Assembly (NCBI GenBank): GCA_002104945.1
Contig: MCFH01000095.1
Span: 1 to 64,000, forward strand
Reading direction: 5' to 3'
DNA length: 64,000 nucleotides
From: Piromyces finnis finn
Lineage: Eukaryota; Fungi; Neocallimastigomycota
The notes below the pieces were generated by a model. It was given only the letters and a program-made list of their open reading frames with translations. It was not told the origin of the DNA and did no database searches. Position 1 is the first letter of the stretch. Every line of letters starts with the position of its first letter. Of the stretch, positions 13,181 through 14,539 are shown in pieces. The position numbers and the translations under genes are program-made.

Positions 13181-14539
13181 TTAATTTTTACATTGTAATT
13201 GTAAATCTTTCCATTGATGAATTTGTTGATACACCTGACTAATATTATTTTTTTGCTCTTCAAATCGTTCGGTGAGGAAAAAGGATTGAATAATGGCTTC
13301 AATAAATAATAAAATTTTATAACCAATTTGAGAAACAATCAACATACGATCATAAGTTAAACGTAAATTTTCATATTCTGATTGTGAAGCGGTGCTACCA
13401 CTACCTGTTGTAGAAGGTGTCTTGGAATTTGATGGTGCGCGTGGTTTATTTAAAAGAAGATTGGCTAATAAAATATGTTCTTTTGGAACGGTATCTAATT
13501 TGGAATGAAGGGTCATCACCCAATGACGAAAATCACTTTTATTTATAATTTGACGAACTTCTTCCCAATCTGGAATTTCAATCTCCTCCTCTGATTCTTT
13601 GGTTGGGCTTATTGGATGAGATAAACTTTGAGAACGATTGGCTCTAGTAGTTTTAGCAGAAGCATCAAGCGTTGAAACGGTAGGAGCAGCGCCACCAAGA
13701 TCACTTTGAACACTACCTCTTCTAACCCTACTTTTCATGGATGTGACTGATGATGATGACACAGAGGAGGAAGGTTGAGTTGATGATAATTCACTAACAT
13801 AGGATGATCTTTGACCAACCCTGCTTTTTTGATCCTTTTCACTCATACCGCCACAACAAATACTATTTGAACGACCTTTGGTCATTTTTTGATTCTTTTC
13901 ACTCATACCACCACAACAGATACTATTTGAACGAGTTTTTGTGCAGCGTAAATAGCTTTCCTCCTTTTTTTGTTGACATTGTGAGCAATGACAATGTTTA
14001 CCACCGGTATATAAGATATATAATACACTAAAAATGTATTTTACTTCTCTTGGAGGTTTTGGAAGGTTACAAAGTTCGGAAACATCTGAACGACTAATAA
14101 CATTAAGAAACACCTTGTAATGAGAAAGTCTTGGACATAAATGATTTTTCATATGAGAAAGTCTTCTTTCCAATGACTTTTTCTTACTTTCCAATGATTT
14201 TATTTTTTCTTCAATGATATCGTAGAGTTTAACCTCACTTAACGATTTAAATTTTTTATTTACTCTACGTAAATTTAATATATCTTCCAAATCTGAGGAA
14301 TTATTAAATATTTTTAATAAAATTTCATTTGGTAATTCTCTGGTACCACCGGTGGTAGATTGTTGTTTAAGGTTATTTTGAAAAGTAACCATAGAATTAA
14401 TACTAGAAATAAGGGTATTATTATGTATTGACTCTGTAATATTTTCAGAAGTATAGTTTGATAACATGGTATCCGTATAATATGGTGTAGTAGTTTCTGT
14501 TGGATTTTCAGTATATAAAGAAAATAAAGTTTCCGTCAT
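13181..14539 (-). CDS. F-box protein with a coiled coil and a dynein stalk/MTBD-like module (452 aa, intronless)
   Basis: F-box motif LPNEILLKIFNNSSDLEDILNLRRVNKKFKSL (aa ~69-100). Downstream segments ISRSDVSELCNLPKPPREVKYIFSVLYIL, DWEEVRQIINKSDF and LTYDRMLIVSQIGYKILLFIEA resemble dynein stalk-head helices. Confidence 0.8.
   Translation of the reverse strand: MTETLFSLYTENPTETTTPYYTDTMLSNYTSENITESIHNNTLISSINSMVTFQNNLKQQSTTGGTRELPNEILLKIFNNSSDLEDILNLRRVNKKFKSLSEVKLYDIIEEKIKSLESKKKSLERRLSHMKNHLCPRLSHYKVFLNVISRSDVSELCNLPKPPREVKYIFSVLYILYTGGKHCHCSQCQQKKEESYLRCTKTRSNSICCGGMSEKNQKMTKGRSNSICCGGMSEKDQKSRVGQRSSYVSELSSTQPSSSVSSSSVTSMKSRVRRGSVQSDLGGAAPTVSTLDASAKTTRANRSQSLSHPISPTKESEEEIEIPDWEEVRQIINKSDFRHWVMTLHSKLDTVPKEHILLANLLLNKPRAPSNSKTPSTTGSGSTASQSEYENLRLTYDRMLIVSQIGYKILLFIEAIIQSFFLTERFEEQKNNISQVYQQIHQWKDLQLQCKN

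Follow-up and report, generated by a model that had tools for sequence, protein, structure and literature searches.

An F-box protein with a dynein-like stalk and microtubule-binding domain in Piromyces finnis and other zoosporic fungi

Dynein heavy chains contain a ring of six AAA+ modules that flanks a coiled-coil stalk, with AAA4 before the outgoing stalk strand (CC1) and AAA5 after the returning strand (CC2). To our knowledge, dynein's microtubule-binding domain (MTBD) has been investigated almost exclusively within the motor. We describe here a gene from Piromyces finnis in which an F-box is followed by a stalk-MTBD module of the dynein type. The gene lies at 13181..14539 on the minus strand of a 64,000-nucleotide stretch (positions 1 to 64,000 of contig MCFH01000095.1), hereafter called the window. 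It was listed as a single-exon, uninterrupted open reading frame (ORF) with an ATG start, encoding 452 amino acids followed by a stop codon. Eighteen orthologues, among them those of Piromyces sp. E2 and Neocallimastix lanati, share 52–75% amino acid identity with it over the full length, with a variable middle. That this protein combines an F-box with a homologue of the dynein stalk-MTBD module is, in our judgement, practically certain.

The closest described relatives of the stalk-MTBD module are found in DNAH10, in Trypanosoma brucei IDAf-alpha and probably in Chlamydomonas DHC1-alpha, which share with it an antiparallel CC1/CC2 hairpin and a six-helix bundle at the tip. The Piromyces protein and DNAH10 have in common a proline in CC1, a PP motif at helix H1, a TVCEC-like core in H1, the W/F/W of H2-H3 and an S-x-x-G in H6. 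Unlike a dynein heavy chain, the protein has only about one third of the stalk, no AAA4 or AAA5 attachments and no motor, and it has lost the CC2 proline. It also differs from DNAH10 in its variable H1-H2 loop (approximately 149 amino acids here) and in having CC1 capped by an F-box. Like Skp2, Fbw7/Cdc4 and Dia2, it carries near its N terminus an F-box that starts with LPxE(I/L)L, followed by a C-terminal domain that in those proteins serves targeting, but its C-terminal module is a dynein stalk-MTBD and not a WD40, LRR or other known F-box partner.

Seryl-tRNA-synthetase fusions (PDB 3ERR and 6RZB) likewise present a short stalk and MTBD on a foreign base, and 3err is the top match in the VIA structural comparison reported below. 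Those fusions are artificial and have their registry fixed at both strands, whereas here the F-box anchors CC1 alone and the end of CC2 is free. MID1/TRIM18 is a microtubule-tethered E3 ubiquitin ligase of the RING/TRIM type that uses a COS box. It follows the same concept, a ligase component with its own microtubule module, but its sequence and fold are unrelated and it contains no dynein-derived domain.

Two chains not labelled as dyneins, 9fqr_Xl (residues ~1333–1496) and 9ya2_L (residues 1207–1457), match the MTBD part of the model with Z scores of 8.2–9.5 over 121–137 residues. Neither has an F-box, and their Z scores fall in a range common for helical proteins; they may be non-motor proteins with a dynein-MTBD-like fold. 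An ESM Atlas cluster of Oomycota proteins named 'Impact N-terminal domain-containing protein' (Impact_N + MT) has PF12777, the Pfam dynein stalk family (MT), in 14% of its members and also lacks an F-box. These matches outside dynein are of MTBD size, with TM scores of 0.25–0.28, and, weak as they are, hint that non-motor MTBD modules may be more common than recognised. A paper on the Toxoplasma conoid does not discuss a dynein-like domain. Literature searches on the combination of F-box and dynein stalk/MTBD, on MTBD-like domains and on chytrid F-box proteins found no publication on the family. A first-pass annotation of the window, made by a model from the sequence alone, had known of no described protein with this architecture. 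This stands as far as papers are concerned, but more than 100 unstudied proteins of this kind are already present in databases, where they are entered as hypothetical proteins or under wrong names.

The F-box and the stalk module

The F-box (14237..14338, minus strand; amino acids 68–101) begins with the motif LPNEILL at amino acids 69–75, in agreement with the first-pass placement at about amino acids 69–100. It matches PF12937 (F-box-like) with an E value of 2.7e-7 and 30.7 bits, above the curated cut-off of 24.3, and PF00646 with 24.6 bits, above the cut-off of 20.5. Of the 106 family members aligned, 89 have a Pfam F-box match. A three-helix F-box fold is predicted by AlphaFold2 (AF2) (helices 71–78, 84–91 and from 95 onward) with a predicted local distance difference test score (pLDDT) of 94. 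The family profile matches the F-boxes of Fbw7, Skp2 and Dia2 in PDB, apart from its matches to dyneins. The F-box is canonical, and the protein is a member of the F-box superfamily.

The relationship to dynein emerges at the level of the family. Taken alone, the window protein matches dyneins with E values of about 0.2, which is suggestive but not significant. In a phmmer search against all PDB sequences, the DNAH10 stalk/MTBD was among its top matches (E 0.18; amino acids 84–181 against residues 3141–3232), and a further stretch matched collinearly. When a profile of 19 orthologues was used, the yeast cytoplasmic dynein MTBD came first (6kio residues 54–104, E 0.17). A profile of the wider family (60 sequences) matched DNAH10 with an E value of 3.8e-20 and 75 bits over CC1-MTBD-CC2, aligning profile positions 82–280 with DNAH10 residues 3158–3340. 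The next matches were 8glv_Cn (1.2e-16), a 4625-amino-acid Chlamydomonas dynein chain which we take to be I1-alpha from its length and the order of the chains, and T. brucei IDAf-alpha (6.8e-11), followed by more than 40 further dynein chains. PF12777 itself matches seven of the 106 family members at E ≤ 0.1, with a best E value of 3.3e-7. A profile built from the 88 members outside Neocallimastigomycota (chytrid side) scores the window protein at 135.5 bits. Since this profile contains nothing from the protein's own clade, the chain from window protein to family to dynein is solid and not circular.

These profile comparisons identify the module as a homologue of the stalk-MTBD in dynein heavy chains, with the best score against inner-arm dynein f/I1 alpha (DNAH10). 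The first-pass annotation had proposed the dynein relationship from a cytoplasmic dynein; the homology stands, and the nearest relative is the axonemal DNAH10 instead. As that annotation also had it, there is no AAA+ ring: a Pfam search of all 452 amino acids returned no AAA+ or dynein motor domain. The protein is not a dynein because this ring is missing.

The predicted structure agrees with the sequence comparison. A first AF2 model from 19 close orthologues was poor (pLDDT 54), and Foldseek gave no match for it under an E value of 1, though dyneins already headed its structural lists. With an alignment of 106 sequences, the F-box, both stalk strands and the helical bundle between them were predicted with pLDDT above 90. 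The resulting model shows an antiparallel coiled-coil hairpin with a six-helix tip (H1–H6), the elements following the same order as in dynein. All of the top 50 Foldseek matches in PDB are dynein heavy chains, the best being DNAH10 (E 1.5e-4, probability 1.00). In an exhaustive VIA comparison with 48,161 PDB chains, ranks 1 to 5 are all dynein MTBDs or stalks: 3err (Z 12.6), 5ayh (Z 12.0), 6l4p_B (Z 11.7, root-mean-square deviation 3.0 Å, 123 of 138 residues), 8i3j (Z 11.4) and 2rr7 (Z 9.6, 134 of 155 residues). Z scores below about 13 may be unspecific for helical proteins, and generic helical hairpins appear in the list at Z ≤ 9.5; the targets that consist of an MTBD only were covered almost fully, and the sequence evidence is in agreement. 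In the ESM Atlas, the best fold matches are PF12777 clusters, while a feature search there with a short family member returned nothing informative. Profile and structural matches to the dynein MTBD are thus both strong, and the lack of any such match, which the first-pass annotation had named as refuting its reading, did not arise.

The outgoing strand CC1 (14132..14236, minus strand, as are all features of the gene; amino acids 102–136) runs on from the third F-box helix in one predicted helix (95–145, pLDDT 94–98) and ends at P136. This proline is present in 97 of 106 members and aligns with the CC1 proline of DNAH10. It is also the kink that had been noticed in the coiled coil, within HLCPRLSHYKVFLNVI at amino acids 133–148. 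MTBD block a (13997..14131; amino acids 137–181), delimited by the family profile and the AF2 model, comprises the junction of stalk and MTBD and H1, with helices at 150–157 and 164–178 (H1), the PP motif (P162-P163) and K167. MTBD block b (13439..13588; amino acids 318–367) comprises H2 (325–332), H3 (335–343) and H4 (353–364) with pLDDT 92–95. It holds W325, R329, K334, F337, R338 and W340, of which W325, F337 and W340 are nearly invariant in the family. MTBD block c (13259..13381; amino acids 387–427) comprises H5 (396–402) and H6 and aligns with DNAH10 residues 3273–3315; it holds T395, Y396, R398, S403, G406, Y407, K408, A415 and Q418. The three peptides singled out in the first-pass annotation occur in the order claimed, ISRSDVSELCNLPKPPREVKYIFSVLYIL at amino acids 148–176, DWEEVRQIINKSDFRHWVM at 324–342 and YDRMLIVSQIGYKILLFIEAII at 396–417. 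The returning strand CC2 (13184..13258; amino acids 428–452) aligns with CC2 of DNAH10 and stops at the stop codon. It continues from H6 in a single predicted helix (404–451, pLDDT 90–98), consistent with the returning coiled coil that had been proposed. The tail after Q418 is at least 32 amino acids long in most members, the shortest being partial sequences. CC1, H1–H6 and CC2 are thus collinear with dynein, as the first reading had held.

The conserved blocks among the orthologues are exactly the proposed CC1, MTBD and CC2 segments. A stand-alone stalk is indeed present, but with about 35 residues in CC1 and 25 in CC2 it reaches only about one third of the dynein stalk length. Across 106 sequences, the spacing from R91 in the F-box to P136 is 45 ± 4 amino acids, and the PP motif follows 26 residues after P136. 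In every sequence, Y396 and Q418 are exactly 22 amino acids apart. The fixed spacing between F-box, P136 and PP motif indicates that the F-box is held at a set height, roughly 5 nm, above the MTBD.

Distribution, selection and origin of the family

A HMMER search of 1.84 billion representative sequences with a profile restricted to Neocallimastigomycota found 65 proteins. About 55 of these are shorter F-box proteins of 220–380 amino acids, with E values down to 5.6e-22, usually matched in three collinear stretches. The whole family contains more than 100 proteins, most of them in this size range. Every member with a named organism is from a zoosporic fungus, which extends the family across chytrids in line with the homologue search that had been suggested. 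These include about 25 genera of Chytridiomycota, among them Batrachochytrium dendrobatidis and B. salamandrivorans, as well as Gonapodya (Monoblepharidomycetes), Paraphysoderma and Blastocladiella (Blastocladiomycota), Caulochytrium and Neocallimastigomycota. Aflagellate fungi and other eukaryotes yielded no member, either in the one exhaustive search, which used the narrow Neocallimastigomycota profile, or in the single word-limited search. Genome submitters have given several members the automatic name "Dynein heavy chain 10, axonemal". This name is an independent echo of the affinity to DNAH10, yet it is wrong: none of these proteins of about 300 amino acids is a dynein, and their database names need correction.

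A quick maximum-likelihood tree of the family broadly follows the species. In it, Neocallimastigomycota form a monophyletic group (Shimodaira–Hasegawa-like approximate likelihood ratio test 100) on a long stem, and duplicates within species are recent. The module is fused to unrelated N-terminal regions in P0081 (Gonapodya, 1462 amino acids) and P0082 (Entophlyctis sp., 750 amino acids), and in P0121 (Nowakowskiella sp., 708 amino acids) the F-box-MTBD module is joined to MFS Pfam domains. These three cases probably reflect the merging of separate gene models and not genuine fusions.

The ratio of nonsynonymous to synonymous substitution rates (dN/dS) was computed by region against one orthologue (L001). 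It is 0.018 in CC1, 0.02–0.09 in the three MTBD blocks (0.04 in block a), 0.022 over amino acids 387–452, 0.12 in the F-box and 0.64 in the region of the first insert. The folded parts, with values of 0.02–0.12, are under strong purifying selection. Low values in both the F-box and the stalk-MTBD indicate that both halves are maintained in one protein. The stalk-MTBD module probably goes back to a partial duplication of a DNAH10-type gene in an ancestor of the zoosporic fungi, followed by vertical inheritance.

Possible function at microtubules

In this family the dynein MTBD is a free-standing conserved module that has been re-used by the ubiquitin system. A role of the protein as an adaptor of the Skp1–Cul1–F-box (SCF) ubiquitin ligase is likely. 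In this role, the F-box would bind Skp1 and thereby recruit Cul1-Rbx1. Microtubule binding is fairly probable, with indirect support from the conserved basic residues K142, K167 (H1), R329, K334 and R338 (H2-H3), R398 (H5) and K408 (H6); at position 330, Q is found here and K or R in 78% of the family. Dynein meets tubulin through H1, H3 and H6, and a construct with a stalk of three heptads has been imaged bound to microtubules (PMC6629372). The MTBD would dock on the tubulin lattice in the manner of the dynein MTBD, and the receptor would recognise microtubules or something bound to them. Ligase activity would then be placed about 5 nm above the microtubule surface, where tubulin or microtubule-bound proteins could be modified. 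An adaptor of this kind tethered to microtubules or the axoneme, as the first-pass annotation had it, is plausible. Taken as a whole, an SCF receptor on microtubules is the reading we favour, with moderate confidence.

Several observations weigh against this reading. The window protein has no match to PF12777 at E ≤ 10 (gathering threshold 24 bits); of the two Pfam families that the first-pass annotation had suggested as checks, only the F-box was matched. The CC2 junction proline is absent, with E428 at the position aligned to that of DNAH10 and a non-proline family consensus, and a disordered loop of 117 amino acids lies within the MTBD. Coiled-coil registry sets affinity in dynein; the stalk here is anchored at one end only, and its registry is not fixed by a second anchor. 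The conserved basic positions were read from the alignment. A dynein-MTBD-like fold may also be present in non-motor axonemal proteins, to judge from the VIA matches to 9fqr_Xl and 9ya2_L, and contact with the lattice would not be required there. Four sequencing runs from three studies contain 85–90% of the locus, their RNA nature being a guess. The absence of the family outside flagellated fungi is provisional, resting as it does on narrow-profile and word-limited searches.

If microtubule binding holds true, the protein offers a minimal stalk-MTBD from nature in which the setting of affinity by registry can be studied, a candidate E3 adaptor for the turnover of tubulin or axonemes, and a lineage marker whose occurrence among early fungi seems to follow that of the flagellum, the amphibian pathogens B. 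dendrobatidis and B. salamandrivorans and the rumen fungi being among its carriers. We know of no E3 identified for chytrid axoneme degradation. A role of this SCF receptor in axoneme turnover is a tentative proposal. The axoneme would be its preferred target because all named members come from fungi with flagellated zoospores and the best match is an axonemal dynein; one such setting would be its proteasome-dependent breakdown once the flagellum has been retracted. Chytrids internalise the axoneme and degrade it with some involvement of the proteasome, according to Venard et al. (2020), a study quoted in PMC11772885, and a ubiquitin conjugation system is active in flagellar disassembly (PMC4588046). 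A more specific version, which we regard as speculative, holds that an I1/f alpha stalk tip was copied from the motor and welded to an F-box, giving an SCF receptor that reads the doublet lattice and is the missing axonemal E3 adaptor. Axonemal tubulin or doublet-bound proteins would then be tagged for proteasome-dependent degradation after the chytrid flagellum is retracted. The fusion would have arisen in the ancestor of zoosporic fungi, and terrestrial fungi would have lost it along with their flagellum.

The alternative that survives best is that the dynein-derived module has been repurposed for protein recognition. In that case an ordinary SCF substrate receptor would be at hand, and its tip would bind not the tubulin lattice but a substrate protein, either soluble or axonemal; an LC1-like light chain, or another partner of the dynein MTBD, is an example. 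The canonical F-box fits this well, as F-box proteins normally bear a C-terminal substrate-binding domain, and the residues that are invariant in the family beyond the dynein consensus (H140, T395-Y396, R398, G406-Y407 and Q418) could form a new site. The MTBD of an outer-arm dynein binds light chain 1 (PMC10205576), the corresponding structure 6l4p is the third-best structural match, and other non-motor MTBD-like folds may occur in axonemal structures (9fqr_Xl, Z 8.5–8.8). Yet the module keeps the six MTBD helices in full, along with the CC1 proline, the PP motif and several basic positions at the surface, tubulin binding is the simplest expectation for so well-kept an MTBD, and no result points to another ligand. 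We consider this alternative rather unlikely.

A dynein-stalk mimic is less probable still. Here the MTBD would occupy the site on the B-tubule that belongs to inner-arm dynein f alpha, and would modulate flagellar beating or mark the site, while the F-box would serve mainly for the protein's own turnover or work outside a Cul1 ligase. The best scores against DNAH10/I1-alpha in mammalian and T. brucei structures, and probably in Chlamydomonas too, the agreement of the automatic names with DNAH10 and the restriction of the family to flagellated fungi are all compatible with it. However, the rigid, length-conserved link between F-box and stalk, together with the dN/dS of the F-box, suggests an F-box in working geometry rather than a degron handle, and there is no evidence of competition. 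That the resemblance is accidental, or that the gene is an artefact of modelling or the decaying remnant of a dynein gene, a reading to which the insignificant E values of the single protein, its lack of a PF12777 match and the poor shallow model might point, has a negligible probability in view of the family profile, the consistent Foldseek, VIA and ESM Atlas matches, an uninterrupted ORF conserved in more than 100 sequences with low dN/dS in its folded parts, and AT-rich flanks without dynein exons or AAA+ ORFs; a pseudogene and a chance coiled-coil similarity are refuted by the family profile, the structure matches and the dN/dS values.

Loop insertions and gene setting

The Neocallimastigomycota version of the module carries additional segments. 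A Cys-rich helix specific to this phylum (13940..13996; amino acids 182–200) was recognised in the orthologue alignment and predicted by AF2 as helix 186–200 (pLDDT ~85). It is an extra helix directly after H1, missing from chytrid members, and its C183, C185 and C188 are invariant in all 19 Neocallimastigomycota orthologues. This cluster may be a metal or redox site. It is followed by insert 1 (13589..13939; amino acids 201–317), a disordered, Ser-rich H1-H2 loop with pLDDT below 50. Amino acids 189–317, which include part of the Cys-rich helix, share 38% identity with the orthologue used for the dN/dS comparison. The H1-H2 loop has a median length of 23 amino acids in the family (106 sequences), against about 149 here, and the long Ser-rich loop is a lineage-specific insertion of the Neocallimastigomycota version, probably with a regulatory role. 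Insert 1 contains a 60-nucleotide (20-amino-acid) tandem duplication at 13826–13933 (amino acids 203–238), starting with RSNSICCGGMSEK and with a partial second copy. The other orthologues carry one copy of the 20-amino-acid unit, so the duplication is specific to the species or strain. The motif RRGSVQSD (13700–13723; amino acids 273–280) lies inside the same fast-evolving insert and reads R-K-G-S-V-Q-S-D in most orthologues. Its sequence is similar to that of a basophilic kinase site, and it could have a part in regulating the loop. Insert 2 (13382..13438; amino acids 368–386) is a short disordered H4-H5 loop with pLDDT 52–65, also specific to Neocallimastigomycota. The span from W340 to Y396 is 56 amino acids here against 31 in chytrids, which puts this second insertion at about 25 residues.

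The N-terminal region (14342..14539; amino acids 1–66) has one predicted helix at amino acids 40–59, a pLDDT of 38–75 and a dN/dS of 0.11. It is kept only within Neocallimastigomycota in the orthologue alignment. An intron in the GC-richer middle of the ORF was considered and rejected, as the segment is in frame, stop-free and partly conserved. The G+C content is 25–39% in the ORF and 8–25% in the non-coding flanks; very AT-rich composition is typical of anaerobic gut fungi.

A Pfam search of the neighbouring ORFs in the window revealed nothing dynein-like. Their sole Pfam match is in a 365-amino-acid ORF at 28541–29638 on the plus strand, which encodes a PA domain and a RING-H2 finger. It is an RNF13/GRAIL-like E3 ligase and has no relation to the F-box/stalk gene. 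Upstream of the gene, (TTG)n and (TTA)n microsatellites (plus-strand reading) occupy 14628–14680, about 90–140 nucleotides before the start codon. The contig of the orthologue L001 has a comparable but shorter triplet run (caa repeats, ~135–150) at the matching place. The 3' flank contains an AT/TA-rich simple repeat at 13063–13120.

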